DNA of 64,000 nucleotides from Kudoa neothunni. Taxonomy: Eukaryota > Animalia > Cnidaria. The stretch is taken from the NCBI GenBank assembly GCA_964304625.1, contig OZ199840.1, forward strand, positions 3,671,631-3,735,630, read 5' to 3'. Positions 14,859 to 59,210 of the stretch are shown in pieces. Every line of letters begins with the position of its first letter. Positions within the stretch are counted from its first letter, which is position 1. The notes beneath the pieces are model-generated. The model worked only from the letters and a program-made list of their open reading frames with translations, searched no databases and had not been told where the DNA came from. Made by a program: the position numbers and the translations under genes.

Positions 14859-17171
14859 TATTAGTTTTTGCTATTTTTATAGTCTGTTAAAAATTATCTT
14901 AATTTTATGTTCACCAATCACATTTGATATAAGTACGAAACTTTATTCTTTTTGTTAAATCGTTTGTAAGGTCTAATTGAAAGTATTGGTGTATATTTTT
15001 AGTAGTTTAAAAGATTTAAATACAGAATATTACTAACCCTTGGCGAACTGGATAATTTGCGCTAGGTTGTTAATAGAACGCAAAATTTTACATAATAATC
15101 TCATCACAACTAAAAATATGAATTTTACGTCACTACACTTTATATCTGCCTAAGGAGTTTCATTAAAAATTAAGAATTATTAAATTTTTCTAACAATAAA
15201 ATTGGATTATATCATAATAATAAACCGTTTTCATTCTGATTTATTGTTAGATCATATTAAAGTTAAAAACCTACACAATGATGTTAATATAAGGAAGATA
15301 GCCAACTAAAATAAAAATTAAGATTTAGCTAACGGTAAAAATTACCTGGTTAAATATACTTTCATATCTAAACTAAAAACTACCATTTTACTCAAATTGC
15401 TATAACATTCCTACTTTTAATCTATGTGCCTAACTAAACATCATCCTCTTCTATCGAAAAAATATCATACTTAGACATAATTAGAAAAATTCATATAAAA
15501 CTTAATATTCTTGATAGGAATATAGTTTTAAGGTTCTTATTCCCTAGAAAATAACTAGTTATTTAATTATTGCTTTATTTTGTTCAGAGATATCCATTTT
15601 ACAAATATACAACGAAATTTCAACATGTTGTTAATTTTATGGTTACCATTATATAATGCTGATACTATGCATATTAGTCGGTTAATATGGTAGAGAGTAC
15701 GAAGAAATTCCAAAATTTGCAACAACGTTGATCTCTTAGAAATTTACGCAACTCCAATAAATATAATGATTCATATAATAGAATCACCAACAATACTAAC
15801 TAGCTAACATAATACGAACTCTAATTTGGTGAAACGCTAATACTCCTAGGTTATGTTTTCTATTGTTCTCCCAATGAAGCACAAATGGGGTAAATTTTCC
15901 CCATAAACATTGTGTCCACACAAAACTTAAGATTTGAATTGTTGGAGCCACCTTTAAATATAGTTAAATAAAAATATTACTCTTATACAAATAATCATTA
16001 CCATCAGTTGGGTTGGTTGGATTGTTAGGATTGGTAGGATTCGTTGGTCTACATAAGTAAGTAAGTAAGTAATAAACAAACAAATTGTCATAAAAGGAAG
16101 TTACGGTGGATTCCCTCCTTGTGGAACAGCGATGCATCTGCCAGGTTGGACGCACACCTTTCATTATTAATATTATAGTTGATAGATGGATATTTTTGAT
16201 ATTTTACTTGTCCACGCTGACACCTATTTTGGCAAGCGTCTTTTATTTGACTTTTATCCACACATGTGTTTTTGTAGCATACCTAAGTTAATCAGTCTCA
16301 TCTCCAACATAAAAATCAATGTCCATGATTACTTTATTGTCATGACAAAGTGCTCCCTCAGGTTTCACTCTCAATTTATCATCCATCGGACCCTCGGGAT
16401 AGCTTTTATTATTTTATTACATTGTCTCAGAAAAATTAAAAATTTGAGATTACTGGCATTCAGAATTTTCCAAGCCAGGCGACCTCATCTCAAAGCTATG
16501 CTTTTTCTCGGTGGAATAAAACGTTCCGCTGCAGACAGCTAAACCACAGTTTTGTTTGTATGCACTATTTTCAACTTAAGACGTCTTAAACGAGATGTAG
16601 TTACAGTTTGCAAAACAAATAATCGGTATCTTCCCCGAACGATTTCAGCGCCCTGCAGTTACGTTCTTTGAACGTGACATGTTTGTCGCATAACTCAGAA
16701 TTGACAAGTTCTTGAGCTAAATTTTATTGTTAAATTATTTAATTTACGATTAAAATTACATTTTGGGAATGGAATCTTGCAGATATAATCTCTTGATGGG
16801 CAAATGCCGTTAAAACAAAATGCCTACAGAATCGTTTAATAATCGAATAATCTACTATTAGAATATTTACGCCATCTTTACAAGGTGAGCCATCTGCTAG
16901 TTTCAAATCAGGAGCCACGCACTTGTCAAAAAGTCAAAACTTTGCATACATCTTCACATAAATTAAAGTTTACTCGAGGACTTTGACCATCGCAATACTC
17001 CGGAATGTCACATTTGTCTTTGGCTGGACGACAAACAGATCTTGACGTCAATATCTGAAATTTCAAAAGTAGGAAAATTTAACATATAATTTGATATTTT
17101 ACTTTTCCGTTTCTACAGCACTCACCATGTGAGCATGGTCTACCGGTATCCCCAAAATTGTCATTACTACC
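13696..17171. repeat. Left arm of a ~3.5-kb inverted duplication (partner 29887-33390)
   Basis: About 99% reverse-complement identity by eye. ORF 16186-16542(+) is identical to ORF 30516-30872(-). Confidence 0.95.
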
Positions 17172-20100
17172 ATTATTATTATTATTATTATTATTGTTGT
17201 TATTATTATTATTGTTGTTATTATTATTGTTGTTATTATTATTGTTGTTATTATTGTTGTTGTTATTATTGTTGTTGTTATTATTATTATTATTGGAACC
17301 ATCGGAGCCTCTGCAGTTGACACAATTAGAACCATTTCCTCCAACTTCGCACATCTAATTGGTGGTTTCAACCAAAGAGAGATGCAATAATTACCTCTTT
17401 CAAGCCACAATCGCAAGTCTCGCCGGGTTCTACAACTCCGTTTCCGCAGACGTTCGAACTAAACTAAATAACTGTGCTATTTCTGATTATAATAACGTGC
17501 TTCCCTACAAATTTTGCACTCACACCCTCACTAAGAGAAGTCAACGCTAATTTCCCGCGTAACGTTGATTTTTAATACAAGCAGTAGAGAGTAATGTTTA
17601 CGGAAAATTTGGCATAGCTTTATAAATTTCCTAAATTTTATTATCTTTTATTAATTTAAATTAGTTTGATTGTCTCTATCTGTCATAGGAGGTTATTATA
17701 AAATTTATAAATCCGTATTTCGCTGTCTCATGACGAACCAAGCGAGTTATTTTTATTTAATAGTGTTATTTTTGAATAAAATTGTTAATAATTATACATT
17801 TAAAATGTTTTTAATTTATTGTATAATATAACCTAAATTATTTAATGTTATAAAATTTAAACAAAAATATTAAAATAAAATAGATGAATTGTCGTCTTAT
17901 TTAATACAGTGGGTAACCGATTTTACGTAATCTCTACGGGGTTGGCAAAAAAGTACGTAAAGTCCACAACGACGGATTTACACGTACCAAGCGGGCGCAC
18001 GCGCACTCAAAAAAAGATTTTTATTTGTTAAAACTATATCACGGACTTTAAAATTACGTAAATAAATTGAGTAAACTTTATTTATTTATATTTATAAGTA
18101 CACAATAATAGTGAATTCCAAATTTATTTTCTAAAACATGGATAAAATTCTGTTATTTTCAATTTTCTAATTTTCCTTCAATGACATTTCATAAAACTCT
18201 TCTTCAATTTAACACAATAGGTTGTATTTTCTACTACCACCGACTTTGGTATGCGTTTGAAATTTGCACACAATCAATTTCTTATTTTTATGGAACTTTA
18301 TAGGTGTTATTTTGACCCCCTCCTGTTCGATATCCTTCATAGTTGATTACACAACGCCCGTATTTTCAATAATACAAACCATTTAATGTTTAATTATCTC
18401 CTACTCGAGTATTATTTCGTCAATTTCATCCTTTTTTTTATTTCATAAAAAGAATATAATGTGGAACTCTCGAATTGACGATTTGTAATTGTTTTTTAAT
18501 TTATAGGAGAAAGAGTTCCAAAGAACCTCAATATTTCATAGTTTTCTTTAAATGTTCAACGCCTCTGGTTATCAGTGATCATAGCTAGTGATTGCGTAAA
18601 ATTCGCAAGTGGTATAGAAATCGGAATAAAAATGTATTTAAAATTAGTCACTACGGATTTTACGTACCTTGGCATTATTTGATATTAAATGAATATTTTC
18701 TATTTGTAAAATAAGGAATATTTATTACAATAAACTTTTGAATATAGACATTTAAGATGAGAATCACTAAGTCGTTTTTTTAGAGTGCGTAAAATCGATT
18801 GCCGACTGTATAAAAAATTAAATAAAAACGTTGAGATACCTAATTTCTGTTTCGAGAATAACACATCTAAAAGGATATATGTATATAATTATTTATTTAA
18901 TTCTGAGACTATTTAGCTCTCTCGGTTGTTTAAAAAATAGTTCAAATCGCGACACTTTGTTAATTAACGAAATGCATAGAGGCTTCCGGTGTTTTAACGA
19001 CGTATTATGATCGTCAATATTTAGGAATAGGACCTTAATAATTATTACAGTTCAAATGAAACCAATGGGTAATTTAATGGGGGCCAACGAATACAATGCG
19101 AAAACCTGTTTGATTTGATTTTATATTTATTTGAGCTGATTTTCGCGTCGATTGTAAGGAAGCACTGTTATAATGCAAGCATTACAGATTCTTTTTGCGA
19201 TTCAACTATGCATGATTTTGTTTTAGCTGCTTTAAGTACGATATCAATGGAGCAAGTGTGAAAAGTTGGTGGAAGTTTTTCTTCCCTTTAATTTATACTC
19301 AAGTATCCGATTGAGATAGCAACTAATACCATGTGAAGACGTATGGTAGCATAATACAAAGTTTGCTATGTGTGCATTGACATGCTGGGGTAATTCGTCC
19401 TATTGGATGAAAAATTATATTTTTGAGTGATGTAATAAAAATATCAAGTCAACTAACAAACATTTTTTTACATTATTCCCATTTTATTCGATTAACAATG
19501 TCGATGAAAATTATCTCAATAACAGCTGAAAGAATTCGTACTTACCGACATGGGGCATACCCAAGTTATGCCCAAGTTCATGAACTACTGTTCTAGAAGC
19601 ATGATTGACATTGAATTTTGATTTCACGCCAACCTGTAAAAAGTTTTTAACCCAGTGATGTGCTCAAATAAATAAATATTTACTTGAGAAACAGCTACAC
19701 CATAACCGCAGACTGCACCTACTGTGCCCAAACCCAATATTGCCCCACTTTTAGAAGCAATTGGATCGATCTCTCTGTAAAGTGAAAAAAAATGATTGGA
19801 TGAACAGTTTATTATTTTGTATATAAACAGGAAGTTGATGTAAAAGATTATACATAAATAACGAAGACATATCTCCCCTTTGCTTATTTCTCATATTTAA
19901 TTTGAGGAAGGAGTTGTATGCTTTATAAATTTCCGTTTTTGACACCTCGATTGGATCCTTACTCCAAATTTCCCATTTTCTTACTCTTATGACCAAATTG
20001 TGCCACATATAATTCTGGAATAAAAAAATAATTGGTATAACGAAGATGAATTTTAATACAATCTGAATAGCTTTAATAATATCTTCTAGGTATTTTTTAG

Positions 20101-20469
20101 GATCTTTACCTTTACTTTTAAGGGTTTCAGTCTATTTGAAATTTGGTCAACATTTTTCGTTATGTATTAACAACAATTTTTGAGAACGAATATGAAAATT
20201 ATTTTAAAATTACTAAATAACTTGAGCTAAAAAAATCCACATCTAGATTTAACTTATTCTTCGATCTTAATAGTTTGCTTGGATTTTTATAGTCCTAACA
20301 CAGGTTAGTTTTGAATGAATAAATGAATATGGTTACAAAAACGCCCTTTTTATGAGAATATTGATGACAATTAACATGATCTAAAATATCTCTCAATTAT
20401 CATTCCAACAATTCCAATAGTACCTTGAAACTGCAACAGAAAAAATATTATAATAATCTGAACCAACAT
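15860..20469 (-). CDS. Secreted adamalysin/ADAM-like metalloprotease-disintegrin, paralog A (about 21 exons)
   Basis: Signal peptide MLVQIIIIFFLLQFQ, then DYKNP, HELGHNLGMPHV, Met-turn CIML, CGNGVVEPGETCDCG, N41, CSHGECC and CRPAKDKCDIPEYCDG. These are followed by Cys-rich/EGF-like exons, a PTNP repeat and a terminal exon ending ICASLGEQ-TAG. Confidence 0.88.
17172..17294 (-). repeat. Coding (AAT/AAC)n microsatellite encoding 41 Asn in paralog A
   Basis: 123 bp, in frame between GSDGS and GSNDNFG. Confidence 0.95.
17907..18808. mobile_element. Tc1/mariner-like non-autonomous element in an intron of paralog A
   Basis: TA-flanked on both sides, with an imperfect ~28-bp terminal repeat (CAGTGGGTAACCGATTTTACG / CAGTCGGCAATCGATTTTACG). 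Confidence 0.7.
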
Positions 20470-21152
20470 CAACGACTATATCAGATGTTTTTTATTATGT
20501 TGAGTGAACACCCTAATTAAGATGAATATTATGTGTCGAATGAAATTCGTCGTGAATTTTTTCAGAGGTAACATTTATTCGAAACCTAAACGGGCTCGAA
20601 CTAGTTCAATTTTTATCTTTTAAAATTTTTATAATGGTAAATAAATGTACTTGGTGTAGTTAAACCGAATCATTACAAACAATATACATATGTATGAGAT
20701 TTTTTCAACAAGTATTCAGATTTTTTGTTTTCATTTTAATTAATACATAAATATAAACGGAATCTTTCTACTGGCTATTTGTTTTTCCTTCTTCGGCGAC
20801 TCTATAATCCATAATTTTGAAAATGACACCCAAAATCCATCTGCTGAAGGATTTTGTCAAATTTCCGTAACATATGAATCATAAATTATTTCTGTATACC
20901 ATAATATTTTTACCGACGGAGGCTTTTTTAAAACAACGAGCTAAATGACTAATATCCTTTCTATTTAGAGGAATCTATGTCAACAAGTGCACATGTATTC
21001 CTTTTTTGTTTATTAAGCATTTATGGAAGCATCTTTATATATAAGTATATCTTTTATAAACTTATTGTATTATCAAATTAAAATCCCACGCATATTCATA
21101 AAGATAAATCTCCTTTAGTATTTCCACGTCATCGCTAATCAGATTATGTAAA

Positions 21153-23849: not shown

Positions 23850-24579
23850 TATTTGAGCAATTTCGGGGATAATACTCATAAAATATGATTATGCGAATGA
23901 GTTTTGTTGTAGAAGTGAACTCAATTAAATCGGATTACTTCAACTTTTTTTTGTCTTATTAATTGAATTTTTTATAGTTATAAAAAGTCTAAAATAAATA
24001 AAAAATTGATACTTTTGTCTAAATCTGTTAATTTTTTATTAAAATATTTTTATTATTTGACATAGTACGATTTTTAAAAATGAAACTTAAAGAATAATTT
24101 AAATCGAAAAGTTTGTAAAGTTAACAAACAATTTACAAGTACGCAGCGAAAATTCTACGTCCGATCTTCCCAAAATAAAACAAGGATTGCCATCTTCGTT
24201 TTATTAGACAACGAAATCCGCACCTCTTCTATATACCTTCCATATACGATAAGGCGTAGCTCAATAAAACTATCTGGTGTATTTAGACCTACGCGTAATA
24301 TACAAATAATTTCAATAATGAAGTAAAGATAAATTCATTATTTCGTTCCAATTTAATGTTAATATTTTAAAATGTCTCGATAAAATTTTCATTATTATAT
24401 TATGTATTAATAATTAGGTTCATCTAAAAGTTAATTAAATAATACAAAAGTTTTATTCATTAATATTTTGAATTAAACGCATCTCGTAAGATGTTCCTGA
24501 ATTATATCAAAAGGAAACATGACGATTGATTAAACTGAGTAAAATAACGATGCATTTATTAATTCTTTACAAATAAAAT

Positions 24580-25010: not shown

Positions 25011-25337
25011 CAGGAGTTTTCGGGTTTTAAACCAGCCCTGACTAGATAGATATAAAATTTTAAAGCAGCAAAATAAAGTGTTAGTTAATACAATATTTAT
25101 TTGACGTTCCACCGAAATCATTCAATCGGAATTCATTAGAATCTAACCGCAAATCTCATCCTTATTTCTAACACTATTATTCCAGGTGTGGCTCATTGAT
25201 TTCTTGTTATAAGCATTTATAATAATTATTAAAATTAAGCGGACTCAAAACGATTGGTTCGTTGCGTCTAATTACACGGGTAAGCTCACATATCTTCTCT
25301 AAGGCGATCCCGGCGGTCCATTCGAAAATTTGAGTTG

Positions 25338-28300
25338 ATGATGTTTGAATATAGGACATGCCTTCTATTTTTGTTATTTATCGGGACATATATAGGTATT
25401 AGAAGAAGAATTCATAATCTAATGTGAGTTTAGAGATATGCTTAGCCAATAAATATTCCAAAAGAAATACAAAAATGGTAGAATCAATTCTTAGACGCAC
25501 ACCTCTGTCAACACTAATAATGTTTCTATGTAGGATTACAAAAACCCAGCAAAAATGTTGAGAGCCGAGAAACGATTGAATGCTGATGTGGATTTCTATT
25601 CGTCATCATTTGTTGTAAATGTGTAATGGCTTCTATTATGTTTATAACTTTTATAGCGTGAATCATTGCAGCGAAAGAAAATAGATCCAAAAAAGTATCA
25701 AGAAGATCTACTTAAGGCCATACAACTGGTAACTTTATTGACTTGAAACCTACCTTTAATATGTACTATTTTAGAATTATATGTGGCACAACGTGGCTAT
25801 AAGGATAAGGAAGTATGAAGTTTGGTCAAAAGATCCATTTCCAGTTTCGAGAAAAGATCTTTACGCTATCTATCATGCATTTTTCAAATATTCAAGAAAA
25901 GTCAGTAGAGACGCGGATTTGGTATCTTTATTTGGGTATCTTTCATATTCAATTATTCATTCGTTAACAAATCAAAATATTTTTTAATTTGTTGATTGTT
26001 TTATATATTCTAACGAATAAAATATGAAAGAATATTCTACTTAATACGTATATATATACATATTAAAGATTATCTTTAATTACAAAATTTTTTTTACTAG
26101 ATATAATTTAAAATGTACTGTTTTTATTTTTCGAGGATTCATCATATATTAAAAAATAATTTGATATACAATTTTTTTAATGAAATATAAAACTATTTGA
26201 TCGGGTTTCTATATTCTAGAGATTTGGACCCAAAAGCAGGAGGTAGAAGAAGTGTCGTTGGATTAGGTACAGTAGATTCTGTTTGTAGACATGGTGTTGC
26301 TGTTTCGCAGGTCAAGAAATGAATTGAATCTCAATTTTATACAACATATATAAAATAGATCGGCTATGGAGCCGGTTATGATATGCTTGAGGCATCAAGA
26401 ACTGTCGTTCATGAACTGGGTCATAATTTTGGAATGAACCATGTGAGTATGTACTGCGTTGGTCAATATAATATTAACATAAAGACGGATTAATTTCAGT
26501 TTTTTTGAATAATACATAATTTTACTATTTGAAATGGGAAAATAAAATATTTTGTATTTTTAACCCTCTAAGCTACGAAAAATACCATCCTCCAACCAAC
26601 TTTGGTAAATATCACTTCAAACTTTTTTGCTTAAACTTACTTTAAAATTATTTTAATTTGATTCGCAAATTTTTAAATAATTCTATCCTAAGAATTTTGA
26701 GAAAACCCGAAATTACTGCGTTAAGTAAGCTCACTCGTGTAGCTTCGGTTATGTGTCGTACGTTTACGGAATAAATTAAACTAAAACAATACTATCAAAC
26801 AGCCATAAAACGACATTTTTGATACAAAATAAACTTTGATAAAATAGTAAAAAAATGAGAATTCAACTTAGACACAATCTGTACATTTATTCGAAAAATG
26901 AAATTTGCAATAGAATTCACTACAATTTAAACATTTATTGGATGGTTTTTGTTATTTTGACGTGGGGAAAATACGCAACACACTTGTTTTATCTTCATGT
27001 TTCTGCTCATCAGCGGCTGGTACGGGGTCTAGGTCATTTCCTTCAAAAAAGTTCGCCTTAATTTCGTTTTATCGTTATATATGTTTCAATATAACGCAAA
27101 AGCATTTATTAATGATAGATAAGTCGACCATATTGAAAAATACAACCATGAGCCATCTCCTGTTAAATCGTCTTACATAAACAGACGACAATATTTTTTC
27201 AACAGTGTCCACTCCCTTTTTTGTTTTGTTGTACCACAATATTGTTTGGGGTTTTTTCTTTCCACATTCACTAGGAATATTCGACTTAATAGTCCCAGTC
27301 AATAAAAGAACCACACATTCTCTTTTCTTGTCAACATATTTTTTTGAAAAATGCGAAGGTGGTGCCGTACAACTCTCTGTGTTTGGAAGGAAGAACACAT
27401 GGTGGTGATTCTCTTTTATGTCATATGGTCCCTAGATACGTTAACTATCTCTCTAATAACCTGGTCGCTAACTTTAAGGATGAAAAGAAGTTGTCCGCCA
27501 CGATCGTTCTTCCGGAATGAAACAACGGGGCTGCCAGTGACAAGACAATACTTTCTCCAACGCTATAGCTTCGGTCAGTTTTACCTCCGTTTTTTCCAAG
27601 GTATGGAGAAATATTTACGATATAATTATCCAAAGGATCGACAAGAAGGAAAAACTTCAACCTGTATTTCGCTGGTTTCAATGGCATATATTGCCTAAAT
27701 GGGCACCTTCATCTAAAAGATACTAACTGCTCATTAACAGTAATATCTTCATTGGGTGGAAAACATATCGACAATATTTGTATCCACATGTTCCATACAT
27801 TGCGAATCAGACAAAATTTGTCGTTTTCTCTCCGTTGTTCTCTAGTAGCCTGTCATCGAAATGAAGACTTTAATATTCGTCGAAATCGGTGATAAGTGAA
27901 GAGTTGTCGACAGATATGCTTCCCTTCAGGTAAACTGAAAAGTTCAGTCAGTGGCTCCTCTCTATCCTTAGGAACGGCCATTAATATTAAGGTTCCCAAG
28001 AACCCTTTAAATTCTGTTTCATCCAGATCAATCCATGAGTCGCGAAATTTGGCTTTCCCAAATATATTTGTAAATTTTGTTATCCCTTCACAAATTTTGG
28101 TTGTGAAAAATATAACAAAGCAATCCAAAATATTTGTGACCCGTTGTGTAGCATATGCGGTTGGACCAGGATAGGAATTCATAATCTTCTCCATAGATGT
28201 CCTCGATGAAATAAGTTTCTTTACTGTCCAGAGAATTCCGTTTTTGCGTGTTGTAGCATTATAAGAAAGCTCATTCTCTGAAATTTCGTGAGAATAGTCC

Positions 28301-30985
28301 TATGGTTCTAACAAACGGTCATCCAATTCACTCTCAGAAGACAGATTTTCATCAAAAAACTCATCAAGGTCACTCATTTACTTTATCCCCAGTAAATTGT
28401 TTTTGTACGAAGGGTTATTCAAATAAGCCCCTCTCTATTAATTGAAGATATATTTATAATCAGAACTGAATTATCACATTAACGTTCGGTTAATATCAAT
28501 AAAAAAATTAATCATAAATATTATCAATCTATAATTTTTTAATTAAAAAAACAAGACTAACACGCCTGCGGAAAGGCGAGTTATATCCACCATGGTTTTC
28601 GCCGTGGTGGCACATTGTCATGGAAATAAGCCGAAATTGATTACTTGTCGTAGTAGTTTCGATTTTTCTCAAAGTTCTTGCGATAGTATTTTTCAATAAT
28701 TTGCAAATCAAATTAAAAAAATTTTTAAAGTAGATTTAAACAAAAAAGTCTGGGGTGTTATTTATCCCAAGTTGGTTAACAAATGGATTTTTTAGAGGGT
28801 GATCCAATTAGATTTTTTCGTTACATTTTAATAAATGCTATAATTCACAAACTTAGATGAATAGCCCAAATTTTAAAAGATTTGAAAAAACGCGCGAGAT
28901 TTTGTGATCAGAATAAAAGTGCTTTGGGGTGTAATACACCCCAAGTCGGTTAGAGGGTTAGAAGATTAAGGATAGAAAATTAAATTTTCTGATTTATTAA
29001 ATCACAACCTTTTCTTATAAAAAACTCAACTAATTTTAATTTTTGAAAATTTTTTGATATCACTAAGGGTTCGCGATTCAAGTGGTGATAATCTGTAGGT
29101 CGCATAACAAGCGAATGCCAATGTCCAATGGATACCAGGTGTATTATGCTTCCTAACAGCTTTACATGGTAAACGCATGATTTCATCTTAGCAATCTATA
29201 GAGATATAGGAAAGAAAGATTACCACCCGCGTTTCACACTTGCTCAATGAGAGTTCTTTTGAAGAATGCAAAAAAATTTCGTTGTTTAAGGGAAAAAATG
29301 AAGGAGGGAGTAATGTGTTGGGGATAGCTACTTGTAATAATTTAACAATTATCAGTATAACACCAATGCTTGTGGAAATGGTATTGTGGAAAGGGGTGAG
29401 ACCTGTGATTGTGGATTCAAAGAAGTATCTTTATTTCTTGTAGTTGTCTTTACATGATTAATTTTTTCTTAGGCTTGTGAGATATCCAAAAACGGTTCTA
29501 ATTGTGTCAATTGCCGAGGCTCTGATGGTTCCAATAATAATAACAACTACAATAATAATAATAATAACAACTACAATAATAATAACAACTACAACAATAA
29601 TAATAACAACTACAACAATAATAATAACAACTACAACAATAATAATAACAACTACAATAATAATAATAACAACTGCAACAATAATAATAATAATAACTAC
29701 AATAATAATAATAATAACTACAACAACAACTACAATAACAACAACTACAACAACAACTACAACAATAACAACAACTACAACAACAACTACAACAATAACA
29801 ACAACTACAACAACAACTACAACAATAACAACAACAACTACAACAACAACTACAGCAATAACTACAACAAGAATAATAATTATTATGGTAGAAATGACAA
29901 TTTTGGGGATACCGGTAGACCATGCTCACATGGTGAGTGCTGTAGAAACGGAAAAGTAAAATATCAAATTATATGTTAAATTTTCCTACTTTTGAAATTT
30001 CAGATATTGACGTCAAGATCTGTTTGTCGTCCAGCCAAAGACAAATGTGACATTCCGGAGTATTGCGATGGTCAAAGTCCTCGAGTAAACTTTAATTTAT
30101 GTGAAGATGTATGCAAAGTTTTGACTTTTTGACAAGTGCGTGGCTCCTGATTTGAAACTAGCAGATGGCTCACCTTGTAAAGATGGCGTAAATATTCTAA
30201 TAGTAGATTATTCGATTATTAAACGATTCTGTAGGCATTTTGTTTTAACGGCATTTGCCCATCAAGAGATTATATCTGCAAGATTCCATTCCCAAAATGT
30301 AATTTTAATCGTAAATTAAATAATTTAACAATAAAATTTAGCTCAAGAACTTGTCAATTCTGAGTTATGCGACAAACATGTCACGTTCAAAGAACGTAAC
30401 TGCAGGGCGCTGAAATCGTTCGGGGAAGATACCGATTATTTGTTTTGCAAACTGTAACTACATCTCGTTTAAGACGTCTTAAGTTGAAAATAGTGCATAC
30501 AAACAAAACTGTGGTTTAGCTGTCTGCAGCGGAACGTTTTATTCCACCGAGAAAAAGCATAGCTTTGAGATGAGGTCGCCTGGCTTGGAAAATTCTGAAT
30601 GCCAGTAATCTCAAATTTTTAATTTTTCTGAGACAATGTAATAAAATAATAAAAGCTATCCCGAGGGTCCGATGGATGATAAATTGAGAGTGAAACCTGA
30701 GGGAGCACTTTGTCATGACAATAAAGTAATCATGGACATTGATTTTTATGTTGGAGATGAGACTGATTAACTTAGGTATGCTACAAAAACACATGTGTGG
30801 ATAAAAGTCAAATAAAAGACGCTTGCCAAAATAGGTGTCAGCGTGGACAAGTAAAATATCAAAAATATCCATCTATCAACTATAATATTAATAATGAAAG
30901 GTGTGCGTCCAACCTGGCAGATGCATCGCTGTTCCACAAGGAGGGAATCCACCGTAACTTCCTTTTATGACAATTTGTTTGTTTA

Positions 30986-31021
<36 letters not shown>

Positions 31022-31215
31022 TGTAGACCAACGAATCCTACCAATCCTAACAATCCAACCAACCCAACTGATGGTGATGATTATTTGTATAAGAGTAATA
31101 TTTTTATTTAACTATATTTAAAGGTGGCTCCAACAATTCAAATCTTAAGTTTTGTGTGGACACAATGTTTATGGGGAAAATTTACCCCATTTGTGCTTCA
31201 TTGGGAGAACAATAG
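25338..31215 (+). CDS. Secreted adamalysin/ADAM-like metalloprotease-disintegrin, paralog B (21 exons)
   Basis: Signal MMFEYRTCLLFLLFIGTYIEICLA, then DYKNP, HELGHNFGMNHV, CIML, CGNGIVERGETCDCG, a ~118-codon N/Y tract, CRPAKDKCDIPEYCDG, Cys-rich/EGF-like exons, PTNP and TAG at 31213-31215. All introns are GT-AG and phase-compatible. Confidence 0.9.
26564..28957 (-). mobile_element. Degraded piggyBac transposon inside the intron after the zinc-motif exon of paralog B
   Basis: Ends TTAA|CCCTCTAA ... TTAGAGGG|TTAG. Fragments include ETEFKGFLGTLILMA, YMPLKPAKY, TIVADNFFSS and YNKTKKGVD. Subterminal GGGG-N-CCCC repeats are present. Confidence 0.9.
29533..29886 (+). repeat. Coding AAT/AAC/TAC repeat, ~118 codons of Asn punctuated by Tyr, in paralog B
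   Basis: 354 bp in frame, built from (N)3-6Y units. Confidence 0.95.
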
Positions 31216-33390
31216 AAAACATAACCTAGGAGTATTAGCGTTTCACCAAATTAGAGTTCGTATTATGTTAGCTAGTTAGCATTGTTGGTGATTCTATTAT
31301 ATGAATCATTATATTTATTGGAGTTGCGTAAATTTCTAAGAGATCAACGTTGTTGCAAATTTTGGAATTTCTTCGTACTCTCTACCATATTAACCGACTA
31401 ATATGCATAGTATCAGCATTATATAATGGTAACCATAAAATTAACAACATGTTGAAATTTCGTTGTATATTTGTAAAATGGATATCTCTGAACAAAATAA
31501 AGCAATAATAAAATAACTAGTTATTTTCTAGGGAATAAGAACCTTAAAACTATATTCCCTATCAAGAATATTAAGTTTTATATGAATTTTTCTAATTATG
31601 TCTAAGTATGATATTTTTTCGATAGAAGAGGATGATGTTTAGTTAGGCACATAGATTAAAAGTAGGAATGTTATAGCAATTTGAGTAAAATGGTAGTTTT
31701 TAGTTTTAGATATGAAAGTATATTTAACCAGGTAATTTTTACCGTTAGCTAAATCTTAATTTTTATTTTAGTTGGCTATCTTCCTTATATTAACATCATT
31801 GTGTAGGTTTTTAACTTTAATATGATCTAACAATAAATCAGAATGAAAACGGTTTATTATTATGATATAATCCAATTTTATTGTTAGAAAAATTTAATAA
31901 TTCTTAATTTTCTAATGAAACTCCTTAGCAGATATAAAGTGTAGTGACGGTAAAATTCATATTTTTAGTTGTGATGAGATTATTATGTAAAATTTTGCGT
32001 TCTATTAACAACCTAGCGCAAATTATCCAGTTCGCCAAGGGTTAGTAATATTCTGTATTTAAATCTTTTTAAACTACTAAAAATATACACCAATACTTTC
32101 AATTAGACCTTACAAACGATTTAACAAAAAGAATAAAGTTTCGTACTTATATCAAAATGTGATTGGTGAACATAAAATTAAGATAATTTTTAACAGACTA
32201 TAAAAATAGCAAAAAACTAATACAGTAAGGTCTCGATATTTCAAGGTTCGACATAGGGTAGTCGACATTTTTCTCAAATTTCTGTAACTAAGATTCGTAA
32301 CCTTTTCGATGTATATAGTCTTCTACTCTAGAGTTATACCCAAAAATATGAAATAAAATTTAAAAGCGCATTTTTTTTAAAAATTCAGGGTCCTCAAATT
32401 TTAATTCGATTAATCCACTAAATTACACATTGGAACGTTTCGGTATTATGAAAGAAGAAAGAAATTTTGGTATAAAATTGGAACTACCCAATATTATGAT
32501 TCAATTACCTCAACCTAAACTGCCAACAAATTACTCTATAGCACTGTAGAAATGAATATCATGAATTCTGTTATTGCGAGTTTTAATCAAATTAAAAATT
32601 AGTTTATTCTTCTCTGAATAGAATTTTATCTAATAAATCTGATATAATTGACTCCAATGTTGTTTCTTTCAGTAAAGGGATTATAAATAAAAACCACACC
32701 CAACTTCAAATTGCATTATATGACGTGATTGTATCAGAACACTAAAAAAGACAAATATTCTAGAGTTTTTATCACCGAGAGGGCAAAACTTTTTTGTTGA
32801 TGATATTGAATCACTGATTTAAATGAAACAGAAGGTTTCCTTAAATATTTTAAGATTTTCTGTTGTTTAAAAATTCACTCTTCGCAGAGAAGATGGAGAG
32901 TTTATGATAATATTGTTAATGATGGGGTAATCAAATTTTATTGGGTAAAACGTGGATACGAAATAGAAAATATATTAAATCTCGATGAGACCGCTCTTTC
33001 CTATGATCAATGCACTTAAGGAACATATGATATAAAGAAAGAGTTGAATTAATAGAAAAAAATGGAACAATCAAAAAACCTGTAATAAAATTATAGTGCA
33101 TAAATTATAGAGATAAAATTTCCACATAATCTCATTGGTAAATTTAAATAGACTGCCTGTTTTAAAGAAATTTATGAATTTTCTTTCAATACATATTAAC
33201 GATCAAAAAATGGATGGGATGGATGTTATCAACTATCTTCGTGATATGTTAAAACTTTAGATCAAAAGTTGGCGAAAGGTGAAAAGTTCGTACATTATTA
33301 GATAGACGCCTTTAACATATTTAATTTAATAACAAAAACAAGGTCTTATCATTTATGTGTTACAAAATAAAAAATGTACCCCGGTTGCGC
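29887..33390. repeat. Right arm of the ~3.5-kb inverted duplication (partner 13696-17171)
   Basis: Near-identical reverse complement of the left arm. It differs by a few substitutions, by (ACTT)n length and by scattered 1-bp indels. Confidence 0.95.
30987..31020. repeat. (ACTT)n intronic microsatellite, longer than the equivalent tract in the left arm
   Basis: TTACTTACTT... run at 30987-31020, compared with about 4 units at 16054-16070. Confidence 0.85.
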
Positions 33391-33469
33391 TTGCGCGAAA
33401 AAAGTGTGGGGGGGGAGGGGTAGTAAAAACTCAAGTCCTGATTTCCTGTGTAATATAGCGACCTTACTG
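32223..33469 (+). mobile_element. pogo/Tigger-like element, counterpart of 13624-14858
   Basis: TA|CAGTAAGGTCTCGATATT ... GACCTTACTG|TA. Near-identical to the left copy except for the last ~80 bp. Confidence 0.8.
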
Positions 33470-33510
33470 TAGTTAACTTGACTTCTTAAACGTAACTCAA
33501 TCATTATTAA

Positions 33511-35025: not shown

Positions 35026-38000
35026 CCCTTCCGGTACCAACTGGGGTATTTAAGTGACCCCATATTATCTATTTTGTTTCTAACTCCAAAAATCAGCTTC
35101 TGATAGTCTTCAAAATTTCAGAATACCTCAATTACTATTATTTCGATATTTTTATGAAAATATTTTTTACAATATAATTAAATCTGATGAATAAATTCAA
35201 AAATAATACTAGAGTTAATTTTTAATGCATCGGGTTAGTTTTCTAATGTTACATATTTGTTTTATAAATATTAAAAATAGCTTTATCACCCCGAAAATTT
35301 GATAATATCCGTTCTATTATATGAAAAAATGGTGCGCCTTTCTAAATATTACCGCCTCGCGGATTAACGAGGATTAATCCGATTACGCCTCGCGCTTAAC
35401 ATTTCTTGTGGATATTGAGGTAGCAATTGTTAAATAACTTTTTTTGAGGCATCGGTAATATCTAGTATGAGACTAGACCAAACCATTGATGATGTTGAAA
35501 AACTTGTTGAGGATTCTTCTTCTGTAGATAATGATAGTTGCTCAGAATACGAAATATCTGAATCAGATGATTGCGGTGAAGATGATTGTGTTATTAGTGA
35601 TATAGATAGTGATGAAGATTTCCAAAGTGACGTTAAATTTGCTCAAGAAAACCCGAATAATCATTCTATTTTTTCTTCCCCGTCTGGTCTTGAATGGTCC
35701 AAAAGAATTTGTTCGAAAACGAAAACTAAATCACACAACATCGTTACTTCATCCTCAGGCATTTTAGAGGAGGCAAACAATATAACGTCCATTTTTGATG
35801 CCTTTGAATTGTTTATGTCGGATGATATAATTAATGAGATAGTAAAATACAGCAACAAGTACTACGAAGAAACTAACCCAGAGACACACACGACAATAAC
35901 TAAAAATGAAATAAAAGCATTTATAGGCATATTAATCGCTGCTGGGCGTTCAAATGGTAAGATGCTTGCTCATAGGAATATGTGGGATGGTAGTCCATTA
36001 TTCAAACAATTATTCTTCCCCACAGTGATGTCCAGAAACAGATTCACTTATATTTATAGAAAAATCCGTTTTGACGATAAAGCAAATAGAATTTATCGGT
36101 TTCAAATTACAAACGACAAATTCGAACCTTGCCGCCAAATTTTCGATCTGTTTAATGAAAATTGCTTGAAATATTATTCACCAGGCACGCATATTACAGT
36201 GGATGAAAGGTTAGTAAGGTTTAGGGGTAAATGTCCGTTTCGGGTATACATGAAGAGCAAGCCCGGACGATTCGGGATCAAACTTTGAGTGGCTGCAGAC
36301 GTAGAAACGTCATACCTATTAAACATTCAACCGTATACTGGGAAGATCGGTGGAACAAGGGAAATAAATCAGGCTGAAAATGTTGTCACAAGACTTGTCT
36401 CTCCATTTTATAGAACTGGCCGAGGAGTGACCGTAGACAACTTTTTTACATCCGTTTCTTTAGCCACGAAACTCTTCAAAGAGAACCTGACATTGACAGG
36501 GACAATTAGGTCGAATAAACGCGATATCCCCAAAGAATTTTTAAAATCGCCACGCCGAGAGGTTTTCTCCTCTCTGTTCGGGTTTTCTGGTCATCTTTCA
36601 CTTTCTTCCTATGTACCCAAAAAGAACTATGCGGTCAATATATTGTCTACCGAATTTCATGATTCTTCAACAGAAGACACATATAGAAAAAGACCAACGG
36701 TGATTCTTCACTATAACAAAACCAAAGATGGTGTTGATAATGGGGATAAAATGACCCAGCCATACTCCTGTTCGCGACCTACTCGTAGATGGCCACTGAA
36801 GATTTTCATGGAGATCATTGATATGGCTGCGTTGAACGCATATATTATTTGGATCCAAAAAAATTCTGATTGGAAAAAAAATGATCGTAGCAAGCTTCAG
36901 AAATTTATTCGCGAGCTTGCTATAGAATTGGCAACACCCAATGTAGCATATCGTCGTGAGAATTCCCATACTCTTCAATCCCACATAAAGTATGGTTTCC
37001 GATTTTTTGAAATCTCTACCAATAATGACGATTTGACGATATCTGAATATAATTCCACTCAGCAATCAAAGAGAAATAGATGCCATTTTTGTCCTCGGAA
37101 TAAGGATAAAAAATCCAGCCTGAGATGTTTCAACTGCTTCAAGTTTGTTTGCATAAAACATAGAGTAAAAAGAAATGTTATTTATTGTTTGGATTGTACC
37201 AATTCTTTGGAATAAATCGTGTTAATATATTTTTTTATTCGGCATATGATTGCAGATTATAAATTATACACAAATTTTCACTGGTAATTGAGTGCGACGT
37301 GTAATTCATTTTACGATCTCTAATGCATTATCATTTATGACATATACAATTTTGGTCTATTATAATAAATAAATTCTACCTAAGGCTCAACGGATTCACA
37401 ATTTTTGAATTTATACACAGTCATGCCATTTGGGATAAAAAATATCGGCCTGTTGAAAAAACGAATAAAATTAACCTCGCTACAGAGGAAAGAATAATTT
37501 TGTTTACAAAATAATTCTCTACTTGGAGAAATTTTACCAAATATGACTCGTAGAATTAAGAAAATATCTACATAAAAGTAGATATTCTAATTTCTGTTTT
37601 CGCTACTATTTTGCGAATTTCAAAAATAATAAAATAATGACAAGGCGAAAGTGATTTTGTTGTACAAATAAATATTAAAAATAATTACGTACAAATATGA
37701 CAGATATGTTGAATATTATTTTTGGTGCCTTAAACACTGATGCTCAAATAATGCAAACTGAAGTCACTGCGTCACTCATTGTTTAAAAATATTATCATTT
37801 TGTGTATTATTCCATGGATGTAACACTATTGACACGGCAAATAATATTTAGAGGTCACTAATTTCGGCTATATTTAATTATTTATATCGCATCGCTTCGC
37901 TTTTGCCTGTCAGGAATAATTAAATAGAGCAGATTTTAAACGATTAAATCTATACAAAGTTTGTGAGTAAGAGTCGCTGAGATCAAAAATTTATATTGAG

Positions 38001-39839: not shown

Positions 39840-39978
39840 TTGAACTATTGGAAATTGTAGCAGTGTTCCTATCACTATAACTATTGTTATGCGATATTGT
39901 TGTTTCCTTGGATATAATAATTGGTTTTTGTTTCTCAATTAATGTGACGCACGCCCTTTGTATAAATTAATCTTATAT

Positions 39979-49200: not shown

Positions 49201-49712
49201 ACAACTCTCCGAAGATTATGGTTTTAATCTCTGCTATCTCTCTTAATTTGGCTTAAAACGTCAGCGTAATTACGCACTAAAAATTAGAGAAAAATCGGGA
49301 TATACGTTAATTCTAAATATACTATTAAATCTATTGTTGCTAAGATTGAATTGGAAAAAGACCAGAGAGTGAGGCAAACAGCCTGACAAAATTGTAAGAA
49401 AAACAAATTTAACATGTTTTCCTAATTAAAACGAAATCCGAACATAATGCATGGGACGACAACAAACCCTCTGCACAAATATTGCTAGCAAGGCATAATT
49501 TACTATGATTCTTTCACACGTAATAATCTACATTGTTAATATTGAGAGCGGTAAATTGTTTCAAATTAAAAACACTATATTTAACCTATTAATATCGTAA
49601 ATAGATATGTTATTGCATAAAAAATTCTACGACAATTTTCTCTCGACATCTTGGAAACGTTTAATCAGGGTGTGCCACAAAATGTGATATAAATCATCTT
49701 GTATCGTGCTCG

Positions 49713-51468
49713 ATGATACTTCTAAATATTCTATTATTGTTTCTGTTAAATCTTGACAGTATTACAAATATTGTTGGAAAATTTATTAAGGTTTATTTAG
49801 ATCCAATTAATTGCAACAAGTTCTCTCATAAAAAGGACACATTGGTAACTACACCATCTCATCCATTTCCTTAGTCTTATTACAGGACTATAAAAATCCA
49901 AAAAAACTATTAAGGTCTAAGAAAAGATTGAATCTGGATGTGGATTTTTACAGCTCAAGTTTTTTGGTATGTAAAATATTACTTGGTCACTTTTCTCACA
50001 GAATTTGATGTGTATACAATTTATTTTGATTAACTCAACTTATAATAGACCCAAACCCTTAAAAGCAAGGGTAAAGATCATAAAAAGTACCTCGAAGATG
50101 TTATTAGAGCAATACAAATTGTACTTAAATTCGGTTACATTATTATATTAACAATGATTTATTTAAGAATTATATGTGGCATAATATGGTGATAAGGGTT
50201 AGAAAATGGGAAATCTGGGAAAAAGATCCTATCACAGTGTCGAGAACGGAAATTTTCAAGGCATACAGCTCATTCCTTGATTACAATTATAGGGATAAGA
50301 AAAGAGGAGATATGGCGTCACTATTTATGTATATTAACATATAACATAATCATATTTTAATATTATATTTCTATAATTATTGATAACTTAATTTATTGGA
50401 CAATGTAGTGAGATCGATCAAAGTAAATCTAAAAGCGGTGGTATATTGGGGTTGGGCACAGTAGATGCGGTATGCAAATATGGTGTAGCCGTTTCTCAAG
50501 TAAGTATAAAAATATGAAATATTAATAACCTCAATAAAACGTTCTTTTAGGTTGGCGCAAAAACAAAATTTGATATTCAGTACGCTTCCAGAACGGTAGT
50601 TCATGAACTTGGGCATAATTTGGGTATGCCACATGTGGGTAGGTGAATATTTTACCGGTTTCCCGTTACGCTATCTTATATTCAACAAAATATTTTCAAT
50701 ATTTTTATTTAAATAATTGCGATTTGAATCAATAATTTGGCCACATTTTTTAAAAATATTATTTTCAACCAACAGAGAAAAGTACACCAACATGTCAATG
50801 CACACATCCAAAGCTCTGTATCATGCTACCATTTGCATTCGCATGGTAATTTCCTATATTATATTTGATTCTGAAATAAAAACTACAGGGAGGAAAGACT
50901 TCCTCCAACATTCCACACTTGCTCTATTGAGATCGTACTTAAGGCAGCTAAAACCAGACAGTGCATTACTAAATCGCAACGAGAAGCTGTAATGTAGTGT
51001 ATTTTAATCAAATATAACATCTTAATTTAGTTCAACGCAAATACTTGCGGAAATGGAATCGTAGAAGCCGGCGAAACGTGCGATTGTGGCATAAAAGAAG
51101 TTTATTTACATTTCTAATTTCTCTAAAAGGCTAAATAATATTTAGGCATGCGAAATTGCAGGAGAAGGGTCTAGTTGTGTCAGTTGCCGAGGCTCAAATG
51201 GTTCCAATAATAATAATAACAACAATAACAATAATAACAACAATAACAATAATAACAACAATAACAATAACAATAATAACAACAATAATAACAACAATAA
51301 TAACAATAACAACAATAATAACGGTGGTGGTATATTTTTAATAAGGTTTGAATTTGATTATTTTATTTAGGCATTAATTATGGGAACAACCAAAAGCTTA
51401 ACTTTTGTTTGGATATCCAATTTATGGGACAAAGGTTCCCAATCTGCTTGTCGCTCGAACTTAACTAG
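49713..51468 (+). CDS. Secreted adamalysin, short paralog C (12 exons, ~367 aa), lacking the distal disintegrin, Cys-rich and EGF block
   Basis: Signal MILLNILLLFLLNL, then HELGHNLGMPHV, CIML, CGNGIVEAGETCDCG and N39-GGG. A 41-bp intron (51330-51370) leads to the homologous terminal exon ...LNFCLDIQFMGQRFPICLSLELN-TAG. The frame is intact throughout. Confidence 0.87.
51206..51322 (+). repeat. Coding microsatellite encoding 39 Asn in paralog C
   Basis: 117 bp of AAT/AAC. Confidence 0.95.
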
Positions 51469-51649
51469 GATGATAATACTTTTAAGGAATATGCGTATTA
51501 AATTTGTTTGGGATTTAGTTAGTAATAGTTGGTATGTCGTTTAATATTATTTGATTTCCTACCTCATAATAAATATCTTATTTATTATTATATAATTCGC
51601 ACAGCAGTATCTTTTAGCTTAAAACATCAGTTGATTGTAAGGTATATAG

Positions 51650-56437: not shown

Positions 56438-59210
56438 ATGAACTCACTTTTCAATTTATTACTCCTAATAATTTTATTAGGTACAAATAATAAATCAAAA
56501 ATTATTTGATATATATTATATTTTTTAGATAAGTGTTTTGGAAATAAATTTTCTCAGAGAAATTCAAAATTGGTGAATTATTTTCAAAATAATAATTAGC
56601 AATAAACTATGTTATAAGTGCTCTTTTACGTTAGGACTATAAAAATCCCCAAAAACTTCGAAGAGCCAACAAAAGATTTCAACTTGATGTTGACTTTTAT
56701 TGTACCTCCTATTTGGTATGTGTTCCTTGGAAAATACCGATAAAAGAACTGACAAATTATAAATAGATGAAAGCTCTTCAAGGAAAGGGTAAAGACTCCA
56801 AAAAATACGTAGATAAACTGATCAGAGATGTCCAGTTTGTATTTATCATATGCCAATTTTTAAATCTAACCTAACACTTCTTGAAGAACTATATGTGGCA
56901 CAATGTAGCAGTACGCATAAGAAAATTAGAAATATGGACCAATGATCCAGTAACCATTTCAACCTCAAATATGAAGACGGCCCATACTCAATTTTTAAAA
57001 TACAATAAACGTAGTAAAGATATGGCAGATATTTCATCGCTTTTGATGTAATTTCATGGACCATTTCAGTTTATAATGCATTTCTATCTAAATAGGGATA
57101 CCGATCCCTCTGCTGGCGGAAACAAATCATTCCTTGGATTTGGAACATTGGCTAGTGTGTGCACTTACGGTGTTTCCGTCTCACAAGTGCTGGCTCCATT
57201 GCTGGGAATGATAACTTACAATTGTTAAGGTTGGTTGGGGAGCACAATGGGATCCCACTTATGGATCTAGAACAGTTGTTCACGAAATAGGGCACAATCT
57301 TGGAATGGACCATGTGAGTATGGCCTATACACATGATATTAACTTTTAACGTTGTAATTTTGCGAATTATGATAATTAAATAGATCGTATTACTCCCAAA
57401 TGCCAATGTACACATTCTCGTTATTGCATCATGATTCCCATGGCATTTTCATGGTAACGATTTATCAATGTTTTTATATTAATCAATATTTGGAGGTACG
57501 AAAAGCTACCACCAGCTTTCCATACTTGTTCTATCGATGTCTTAATTAAATTTGATAAACACAGAGACTGTATTTCAAAGAAAATGCCTCAGACAGTAGT
57601 TTTAGTTCATTGCGTGCCTTAATTTAAATTCAAGTATAAAACAAACGTATGTGGAAACGGTATTGTAGAAGATGGCGAAACTTGCGATTGTGGCTTCAAG
57701 GAGGTAAGAATTTATTAGTAAATTTAAAATTTCTATAATTATTGAAATAGGTTTGTGAAATAGAAAAGAGAGCGACTGGGTGTAAAAACTGCCAAGGCAG
57801 AGATGGCTCCGATAGCGATAATAATGGCAATAATAACAATAATAATAATAATAATAATAATAACAATAATAATAATAATAACAATAACAATAACAACAAT
57901 AATAATAATAATAACGGTCCTACTGATAACTTTGGCGATACTGGTAGACCATGCTCACATGGTGCGTGCTGTAGAAATGGACGAGTAAAATATTAAATGA
58001 GATTATATATTAAATTTTATTACGTTTGAAATCTAAGATATTGACGTCGAGATCTATTTGTCGTCCAGCCAAAGACAAATGTGACATTCCGGAGTATTGT
58101 GATGGTCAAAGTCCACAAGTAAACTTTAATTTATTTGGATATGTGTGCAGTTTTGACTTTTTGGCCAGTGCGTGGCTCCTGATTTGAAGCTAGCAGATGG
58201 CTCCCCTTGCAAAGATGGCGTAACTATTCTGAAACCAGTTTATTTGGTCATTTAACGATTATAAAGGCATTTTGTTTCAATGGAATTTGTCCTTCGAGAG
58301 ATAATATCTGCAAGATTCCTTTTCCAAAATGTATTTTAATAGTTAAACCAATAGTTGTAACTATTACATTTAGCTGAAGGACTTATCAACTCTGACTTGT
58401 GCGATAAGCATGTCACTTTTAAAGAACGTAACTGCAGGGCGCTAAAATCATTCGGAGAAGACACCAACTATTTGTTTTGTAAACTGTACTCTGAAATTTT
58501 TCTTTGAACAAATTTTAATTAAAAATAGAGCTTACAAACAAAACTGTGGTTTAGCTGTTTGCAGTGGTTCGTTTTATTCCACCGAGAAAAAACACAGCTT
58601 TGAGATGAGGTCGCCTGGCTTGGAAAATGCTGAATGCCAGTAACCTCAACATTTTAATTTTTTCACAATAGTGCAATTAACTAATTATAGTTATCCTGAA
58701 GGCCCTATGGATGATAAATTGAGAGTGAAACCTGAAGGAGCACTTTGTCATGACAATAAAGTAATCATCGTCAGTAATTCTTAATTTTGAGTTTGGACTG
58801 ATTACCTTAGATATGTTACAAAAACAAATGTGTGGAAAAAAGTCAAATAAAGGACGCTTGCCAAAATCGATGTCAGCGTGGACAAGTAAACTATCAAAAA
58901 TATTCATCTATCGACAATAATTAAATAAGGTGTGTGTTCAACCTGGTAGATGCATTGCTCTTCCTCAAGCAGGAAATCCACCGTAACTTTCTTTTATTGC
59001 GAGGTGCTTTATTTTTTTATTTAGGCCAACAAATCCAACCAATCCAACCAATCCAACTTATCCTACAAATCCAACTGATGGTGGTATTTTCTTAAATAGC
59101 TTAAATTTACTTAGTTTCTAATAGGTAATAACAAAAACCTGAACTTTTGTGTGGATTCCATGTTTCAAGGGAGAACAAACTCCATTTGTTTTTCTCTGAC
59201 ATCTGAATAG
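56438..59210 (+). CDS. Secreted adamalysin/ADAM-like metalloprotease-disintegrin, paralog D (21 exons)
   Basis: Signal MNSLFNLLLLIILLDKCFG, then HEIGHNLGMDHV, CIMI, CGNGIVEDGETCDCG, N29 and CRPAKDKCDIPEYCDG. These are followed by Cys-rich/EGF-like exons, PTNP and the terminal LNFCVDSMFQGRTNSICFSLTSE-TAG. Confidence 0.9.
57829..57915 (+). repeat. Coding microsatellite encoding 29 Asn in paralog D
   Basis: 87 bp of AAT/AAC. Confidence 0.95.

Follow-up and report, generated by a model that had tools for sequence, protein, structure and literature searches.

A mosaic cluster of predicted secreted metalloprotease genes in Kudoa neothunni with breakpoints at a coding poly-Asn microsatellite

Introduction

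Can a repeat within coding sequence determine where the old and young parts of a gene meet? This question is raised by four related genes, A to D, in a 64,000-nucleotide (nt) stretch of the genome of the cnidarian Kudoa neothunni (hereafter the window; contig OZ199840.1, here C3, positions 3671631-3735630). The four genes encode predicted secreted metalloproteases, and each contains an array of Asn codons (poly-Asn) in exon e9. A preliminary description of the window proposed that the relationship between the copies switches at this array and that the array is the hinge of a domain-shuffling system, in which diversified protease domains are paired with an exchangeable disintegrin/Cys-rich cassette. 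The comparisons reported here locate the switch at the array and indicate that the block downstream of it was swapped or lost at least three times, in events of differing age or type, each of which broke at the 3´ edge of the array. They speak against a dedicated shuffling system.

Results

Segments of different age in four paralogs

Self-comparison of the window yielded four related genes. Gene A (15860-20469, reverse strand) comprises a signal-peptide exon, a short Cys-containing linker and exons e1 to e18, with conserved AG/GT sites, an open frame and a stop codon ending at 15860. Gene B (25338-31215, forward strand) lies head to head with A and has a 2.65-kb intron between e5 and e6. Gene C (49713-51468, forward strand) consists of the catalytic exons e1 to e8 and e9 up to the array, followed by the terminal exon; the disintegrin/Cys-rich block is absent and the frame is kept. 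Gene D (56438-59210, forward strand) is full length. The genes share a 19-exon plan (e1-e9, e10-e16, e16b, e17 and e18) with open frames, retained splice sites and introns mostly of ~40-50 nt (about 45 nt).

A and C form the closest pair upstream of the array. The nucleotide identity in e1-e7 is 74-84% (~80%) for A and C, 54-62% for A and B, 50-67% for A or B with D, and 47-70% (~58%) for the other pairs. The synonymous divergence (dS) is 0.89 between A and C and saturated for every other pair, and the nonsynonymous divergence (dN) of 0.35-0.41 shows how strongly the catalytic halves have diverged. A different relationship is observed downstream. A and B are 100% identical at the nucleotide level in e10-e18 (dS 0), and both are 85-94% (~90%) identical to D in e10-e17, exons that C does not possess. 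The downstream comparison of A/B with D gives a dS of 0.54 and a dN of 0.03 (dN/dS 0.06), with 97% identity at the amino-acid level. In the terminal exon e18 the relationship changes again: A and B remain 100% identical, B and D are 68% identical, A and C 57%, and C and D 60%, so that C shows 57-60% identity to the others.

The introns follow the same division. The downstream introns of B and D are 51-85% identical (mean ~71%), whereas upstream introns are 40-52% identical (mean ~45%), which equals the shuffled control. Protein-level selection cannot explain the contrast between the segments, because the introns show it too. Together, these values indicate that different parts of A to D coalesce at very different times. 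The preliminary description had reported the switch at the array, the near-identity of A and B and the alignable introns of B and D beyond it, and the missing block of C, all of which are borne out. It had also paired A with C and B with D in the upstream half. The first pairing is recovered in trees from both the nucleotide and the protein alignment (IQ-TREE, fixed models), in line with the dS of 0.89. The second is not borne out: none of the three topologies that keep A with C is rejected (approximately unbiased (AU) test, p 0.13-0.87), and B and D are placed differently by the nucleotide and the protein tree.

Three junctions at the 3´ edge of the array

The poly-Asn array is located in e9 of every copy, at 17172-17294 in A (reverse strand; 123 nt of plain AAT/AAC), 29533-29886 in B (forward strand; 354 nt, in which Tyr codons are interspersed and a higher-order period of 21/24 nt is present), 51205-51322 in C and 57809-57914 in D (both forward strand). 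The length varies from 106 to 354 nt, and the coding frame is kept in all four genes. The array of B is approximately three times as long as the others and carries a Tyr codon (in one case Cys) at about every seventh residue; it resembles a minisatellite rather than a simple trinucleotide repeat.

The older of the downstream exchanges is seen between B and D. A two-breakpoint likelihood scan of 2,100 aligned columns delimits a block that is 83% identical, with 51% identity on either side of it (twice the log-likelihood difference, 246). The 5´ break falls at B 29892-29908, which is 6-22 nt beyond the last base of the array (29886), and the 3´ break is best placed at 30964-30993, at a (TTAC)n microsatellite in the intron between e16b and e17 (30983-31021, forward strand; the repeat of A is shorter by 17 nt and D has none). 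The following exon e17 encodes a low-complexity PTNP tract (B 31027-31073, forward strand; A 16002-16048; D 59025-59080), and its identity of 71-85% allows the 3´ break to extend anywhere up to 31073. The segment of B that starts at the 3´ edge of the array and stops with e17 (29897-31073, forward strand), termed the cassette here, matches A 16002-17161 and D ~57921-59023, possibly to 59080. Its product comprises most of the disintegrin-like domain together with the Cys-rich region.

The identity between A and B begins at the same place and extends farther. The last difference lies 6 nt past the array, at B 29892. Over the 1.18 kb of 29897-31073 there are no differences save 17 nt of TTAC-repeat length, and over 31074-33391 there are four substitutions and ~16 one-base indels. 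The identity collapses at B 33391 and A 13695, beyond which 24 of the next 80 bases differ. A and B thus carry the arms of an inverted repeat of 3.5 kb each. The right arm (29893-33391, forward strand) runs from the rest of e9 through e18 and takes in 1.0 kb of 3´ flank as well as 1.17 kb of a transposon; the left arm (13695-17165, reverse strand) matches it, and the ~12.7-kb spacer contains both catalytic halves. The second repeat had been described as the far boundary of the B/D similarity and of the loss in C. It does bound the B-D block, which ends between 30964 and 31073, and the loss in C, which joins the end of e17; the A/B identity runs 2.3 kb past it into the transposon.

This transposon is a non-autonomous DNA element of 1,251 bp (32221-33471, no strand assigned), with a matching copy beside A at ~13615-14865. 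It has 23-nt TA-CAGT inverted termini of the Tc1/mariner/pogo type and is present in more than 40 copies in the genome, which are 73-86% identical to each other. The outer end of the A/B arms falls 80 nt inside the distal end of the element. Both loci carry the element terminus with differing sequence, which suggests that the A/B tract was resolved within pre-existing transposon homology. The contrast between the clean inner 1.18 kb and the ~20 differences in the outer 2.3 kb hints that the cassette alone may have undergone a later conversion nested within the arms; this contrast is suggestive only. An apparent cluster of 11 mismatches in the arms proved to be two offsetting one-base indels. 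The erosion of an ancient whole-gene inverted duplicate, as a palindrome origin of A and B, was also considered and rejected, because the upstream sister of A is C and not B.

The third junction is the deletion in C (51323-51370, forward strand). Here, GGT GGT G comes after the array and precedes a 41-nt intron that is positionally homologous to the e17-e18 intron, and e18 starts at 51371. The first codon after the array is fused in frame to the final bases of e17, with the donor site intact. Two DNA runs of a single sample, which may be the source sample, yielded contigs that agree exactly with C as far as the array, and again from 40 nt of array through GGTGGTG and the intron into e18; they stop inside the array and do not bridge it. 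Two RNA runs under the same species label yielded no reads on C, an outcome that does not bear on its expression or splicing.

All three junctions (B-D, A/B and C) lie 3-22 nt 3´ of the array and within ~20 nt of one another, and two of the events, the B-D block and the C deletion, share the TTAC/PTNP region as their far end. Under uniform placement in a gene of ~2.8 kb, the chance of the 5´ coincidence is ~0.0003-0.006, a rough estimate of our own made post hoc and not the result of a program. The reuse of the array edge by three separate events, as proposed earlier, is supported by these data: the B-D block has a dS of 0.54, the A/B arms are essentially undiverged, and C carries a deletion.

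Gene models and domain architecture

The window belongs to an assembly of 40.26 Mb, which consists of three chromosome-size contigs (17.15, 12.04 and 11.05 Mb) and an 18-kb piece; the GC content is ~30%. An exhaustive protein search with a 58-residue catalytic exon returned no matches. In view of the lack of an external full-length relative, the exon models were taken from paralog alignments, with conserved AG/GT sites and open frames as criteria. Exons were joined for translation, dS and trees, and the family evidence was gathered exon by exon.

The translations of A to D and of an outgroup paralog, F, contain the zinc motif HELGHN(L/F)GM(P/N/D)H and a C-I-M Met-turn, which agree with the HEXXHXXGXXH motif and Met-turn of the M12B family. 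The best PDB matches of exon e5 are metalloproteinases of snake venom (SVMPs) from the P-I and P-III classes and ADAM8, at residues 131-153 around the zinc site. Against Pfam, this single exon, as opposed to the joined protein, scores 18.5 bits for Reprolysin (cut-off 20.8) and 20.1 bits for Reprolysin_3 (cut-off 22.4). A Pfam Reprolysin scan of the whole genome found one unrelated exon only, because the exons are too short. Exon e8 matches ADAM10, ADAM22 and P-III proteins at residues ~214-230 (E 3e-4), and exon e10 matches RVV-X, atragin and ecarin at residues ~265-290 (E 5e-5). Exon e10 also matches Pfam Disintegrin (E 9e-7, 30 bits; the cut-off for the whole domain is 35.1), and a whole-genome Disintegrin scan recovers A, B and D. 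The disintegrin-like domain is therefore collinear behind the catalytic domain, as in the metalloprotease, disintegrin-like, Cys-rich architecture of P-III SVMPs and ADAMs.

Both ends of the proteins are short. By inspection, a start codon and a signal-peptide-like hydrophobic exon lie only 170-200 nt 5´ of e1, and the linker that separates this exon from e1 has ~15 residues, among them one Cys and a dibasic site; no long prodomain with a cysteine switch is seen (Pep_M12B_propep; judged by inspection and not by Pfam). Inspection likewise revealed no EGF-like module, transmembrane helix or cytoplasmic tail after the Cys-rich exons. The C-terminus consists of the PTNP tract and a terminal exon of 30 residues with two Cys, no hydrophobic span and a stop codon. 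The zinc motif and Met-turn, the matches of e5, e8 and e10, and the PTNP end without a transmembrane segment identify A to D as predicted secreted, prodomain-less, P-III-like M12B (reprolysin/ADAM-type) metalloproteases.

The array follows the initial six cysteines of the disintegrin-like domain and precedes the GDTGRPCSHGECC motif. It is flanked by the matches of e8 (P-III residues 214-230) and e10 (residues 265-290), and hence lies inside the disintegrin-like domain rather than at the border between the catalytic and disintegrin-like domains, where the preliminary description had placed it.

The remaining features of the window are as follows. The e7-e8 intron of A (17464-19185) is 1.7 kb long, compared with 39-46 nt in B, C and D, and probably contains an insertion. 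A decayed remnant of a piggyBac-type transposase (Pfam DDE_Tnp_1_7) occupies 27075-28194 (reverse strand) within the e5-e6 intron of B. A second, nearly full-length remnant of this type (DDE_Tnp_1_7; 35467-37215, forward strand) has one frame interruption at 36286-36288. Other genes in the window include a kinesin motor exon (10307-10795, forward strand; Pfam E 1e-40) and a protein kinase fragment (2772-3194, reverse strand).

Paralogs elsewhere in the genome

The genome contains 23 matches to the disintegrin exon, from which six further paralog pairs were compared. In the 40-Mb genome, close mutual resemblance and the array are both confined to A to D. The nearest other paralog, the outgroup F (C2, ~3445567-3448832), has the same exon plan and no array. 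Its e16 continues into an open frame with no conserved donor site, and its C-terminus probably differs.

Five of the six pairs (P1, P2, P3, a C1/C2 subtelomeric pair and a pair at 2.21/2.30 Mb on C3) are recent whole-gene duplicates, which are uninformative on internal breakpoints. The sixth, P4, is a tandem ADAM-like pair on C2 (11840261-11841641 and 11848507-11849887; L024, L025) that shares a tract of 1,380 bp with two mismatches. The tract spans the e7/e8 intron through the disintegrin and Cys-rich exons. In its flanks, the catalytic exons are 45-59% identical at the amino-acid level and the 3´ part is unalignable. P4 shows this pattern without a repeat. An accessory block that is homogenised next to a protease domain that diverges is thus a recurrent theme in the genome, independent of the microsatellite.

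Recent segmental duplication of the ADAM-like family is common in the genome. An inverted segment of at least 8.8 kb, 99.84% identical and carrying an ADAM-like gene, is shared by C1:17055158-17064000 and C2:11994160-12003000 (L026, L027), near two chromosome ends, and points to a recent subtelomeric exchange. Whole-gene ADAM-like duplicates with ~99% identity occur on C3 at 2113300-2117017 and 2149129-2145399 (L013-L016; inverted) and at 2209001-2219000 and 2295001-2305000 (L032, L033; direct).

Discussion

A repeat as a possible site of breakage and homology

The mosaic structure of the cluster, its breakpoints and the relative ages of its parts can be read directly from the alignments; from them we infer what part the repeat played, which way the copying went and by which pathway repair took place. 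A young segment between much older flanks, as expected from interlocus conversion, is found in B-D, in A/B and in P4. We consider it fairly probable that the cluster evolves as a mosaic by ectopic conversion between paralogs and by deletion, with the microsatellite as a site of breakage and homology.

The process would begin with a break or a stalled fork in or beside the AAT/AAC array, which is likely prone to breakage or slippage. The array would be the only stretch with register-free homology between otherwise saturated paralogs, where annealing could occur in any register. Copying would then move away from the array through the one region with enough similarity to support it and stop at the next homology, either the PTNP/TTAC region or a transposon copy. 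In the other direction, the length heterology of the arrays (106-354 nt) would block the spread of heteroduplex into the catalytic half, so that repair would start or stop at the array edge. Three events may be distinguished. In an old event, the block would have been copied between the B and D lineages (dS 0.54). In a recent event, it would have been copied between B and A as part of a 3.5-kb long-tract conversion between inverted copies, which ended in homologous transposon copies. The direction was probably from B to A, because e18 of A is no closer to its upstream sister C (57%) than any other pair. The third event would be the in-frame deletion of the block in C. The mechanism is plausible in the light of precedents: in human sperm typing, microsatellite length heterology shifts repair to non-crossovers with long or complex tracts (PMC6485458), and multi-kilobase long-tract conversions with template switching at termination are documented (PMC5104497). 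The best reading is that the pattern would be a by-product of repeat instability and of purifying selection on the block (dN/dS 0.06), with no dedicated shuffling device.

Several observations weigh against a leading role of the repeat. First, the 42 nt of e9 immediately 5´ of the array (B 29491-29532, A 17295-17336 and C 51163-51204) are 83-90% identical among A, B and C. By eye, B differs there from A at 4 positions, from C at 7 and from D at 16 (B-D 62%). B is A/C-like in this stretch although it shows only ~58% identity to A and C in e1-e7; thus, at least one older exchange appears to have ended upstream, inside the e9a part of e9, and at least one exchange would have crossed or begun upstream of the array. 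Second, the P4 tract ends at plain exon/intron junctions with no repeat at either. P4 homogenised the same block without a repeat, so selection on the surviving tracts could explain part of the pattern. Third, the identity of the A/B arms is read from the assembly sequence, and many of the outer-arm differences are one-base indels, which may be assembly or consensus noise. Fourth, the predicted DNA secondary structure of the junction 60-mers (minimum free energy 0 to -3.9 kcal/mol, z -0.8 to +1.8) is no better than that of controls. Finally, the evidence comes from one genome and one cluster, with no further array-bearing gene in 40 Mb.

Alternative explanations

The main rival, which probably contributes, is a filter by selection: tracts would begin and end anywhere, the survivors would be those that homogenise the conserved block and spare the catalytic half and the tail exon, and the array would be a bystander. 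As the whole explanation, it is possible but unlikely. The internal-block pattern of P4, which arose with no repeat, the strong purifying selection on the block (dN/dS 0.06) and the high divergence of the catalytic halves (dN 0.35-0.41) all agree with it. The filter predicts, however, that ends should be scattered or lie at the domain border (e7/e8), rather than three within ~20 nt inside the disintegrin-like domain. Moreover, the C deletion, which is another kind of event, uses the same junction, and the distal end of A/B falls in non-coding transposon DNA, where protein selection is irrelevant.

A stronger role for the repeats is improbable. The poly-Asn and PTNP/TTAC repeats would in that case be maintained as delimiters of a recombination cassette and serve as preferred break and annealing sites, such that the module is homogenised, swapped or dropped while the protease domain is left untouched; populations would then segregate many chimeric and cassette-less alleles. 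Very improbable, in our judgement, is the strongest form of the preliminary proposal, in which poly-Asn is maintained as an evolvability device that re-pairs diversified protease domains with a removable cassette, in the manner of the Plasmodium var genes. This form gains from the reuse of the array edge and of the second low-complexity tract as junctions, from the in-frame array in all four genes and its absence from the outgroup paralog, and from the precedent of recombination-inducing elements concentrated at the domain borders of a paralog family (PMC3936766). It is opposed by the small number of events, only three or four in one four-gene cluster, and by the lack of other array-bearing paralogs. 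In practice, no new combinations of protease and cassette have resulted; instead, the cassettes were made alike (A equals B, and D is 97% identical at the amino-acid level). The array is not at a domain border, the junctions have no folding propensity, unlike those of var, and P4 manages without an array. A shuffling system is not supported: the repeat occurs in only four genes and is missing from F and from the P4 breakpoints, the distal bound of A/B is a transposon, and one older exchange ends ~42 nt upstream of the array. Nor did the recurrence expected of such a system emerge from the genome-wide paralogs, in which no other gene bears the array and the P4 breakpoints lack a repeat.

An assembly artefact, with the A/B identity as a collapsed or copied repeat or C as a mis-join inside the microsatellite, deserves hardly any credence. 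In its favour are the 1.18 kb of identity between the arms, the one-base indels, typical of consensus noise, that make up most of the outer differences, and the read contigs that stop inside the C array without a bridge. Against it, the arms lie in different unique contexts with arrays of 123 and 354 nt and different internal structure, they differ by 17 nt of TTAC length, four substitutions and their transposon ends, the read contigs of two runs reproduce C on both sides of the array, and frames and splice sites are open and kept in all four genes.

Conversion and deletion at the array therefore remain our preferred account. The cluster is a new example of known processes and not a new kind of system. 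It is an unusually clean natural case, with tiny introns, saturated flanks and sharp breakpoints, in which two conversion tracts that differ in age and one domain-loss deletion, all in one small cluster, have ends that coincide with a coding trinucleotide repeat. If the repeat truly directs these events, it would provide a simple model, open to testing, of the way in which coding sequence of low complexity shapes how secreted proteases evolve as modules. If it does not, the cluster would be a well-resolved instance of ordinary concerted evolution, in which one domain evolves in concert next to another that diversifies, a pattern found twice in this genome.

Comparison with known systems

In the var and rif paralogs of Plasmodium, recombination-inducing sequences are located at domain borders (PMC3936766). 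The present cluster resembles them in that a short feature inside a paralog family coincides with ectopic breakpoints, and it resembles the microsatellites typed in sperm (PMC6485458), where heterology in repeat length alters the repair outcome. Unlike var and rif, the junction 60-mers of A to D have no predicted structure and the feature lies inside a domain rather than at its border. A var-like role of DNA secondary structure at the junctions was rejected, because the 60-mers are predicted to fold less well than control stretches. In addition, the A-D events number three or four, with no genome-wide hotspot map, and are known from sequence alone.

The arms of Y-chromosome palindromes undergo arm-to-arm gene conversion. 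A and B share several features with these palindromes and with ectopic conversion in general: non-reciprocal patches of near-identity between much older flanks, inverted arms kept identical, and ends where homology changes. Interlocus (ectopic) conversion between duplicated genes has been reviewed (PMC3924818, PMC3924832), and the present case differs from the typical one in two respects. The A/B tract is long (3.5 kb) and anchored by a coding trinucleotide array and by dispersed transposon copies, and its 5´ end is also that of an older patch and of a deletion.

A further close comparison is with the SVMP complex. Rattlesnake P-II and P-I SVMPs arose from P-III genes via intragenic deletions, and paralog fusion genes are common (PMC7245079); recombinants between SVMP classes have been inferred from cDNAs (PMC3217872). 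As in that complex, A to D form a tandem cluster of predicted secreted M12B proteases with metalloprotease, disintegrin-like and Cys-rich parts, in which the catalytic and disintegrin parts differ in history and one member, C, lost its accessory domains by intragenic genomic deletion. The A-D cluster differs in that it belongs to an unrelated lineage with a tiny 40-Mb AT-rich genome, ~45-nt introns and no long prodomain. Its C deletion is in frame and keeps the terminal exon, whereas SVMP deletions create a stop codon, and its exchanges are patches of internal conversion with a coding microsatellite at their boundary rather than deletion fusions. A venom role is not known for A to D. The P-III/P-II/P-I series, invoked in the preliminary description, is thus a fair analogy for C, which also arose by intragenic deletion (as in PMC7245079). 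By analogy, C may be regarded as a convergent in-frame counterpart of SVMP domain loss and A as a counterpart of the SVMP chimeras, which would make this cluster an independent parallel to the loss of accessory domains in snake venom metalloproteinases.

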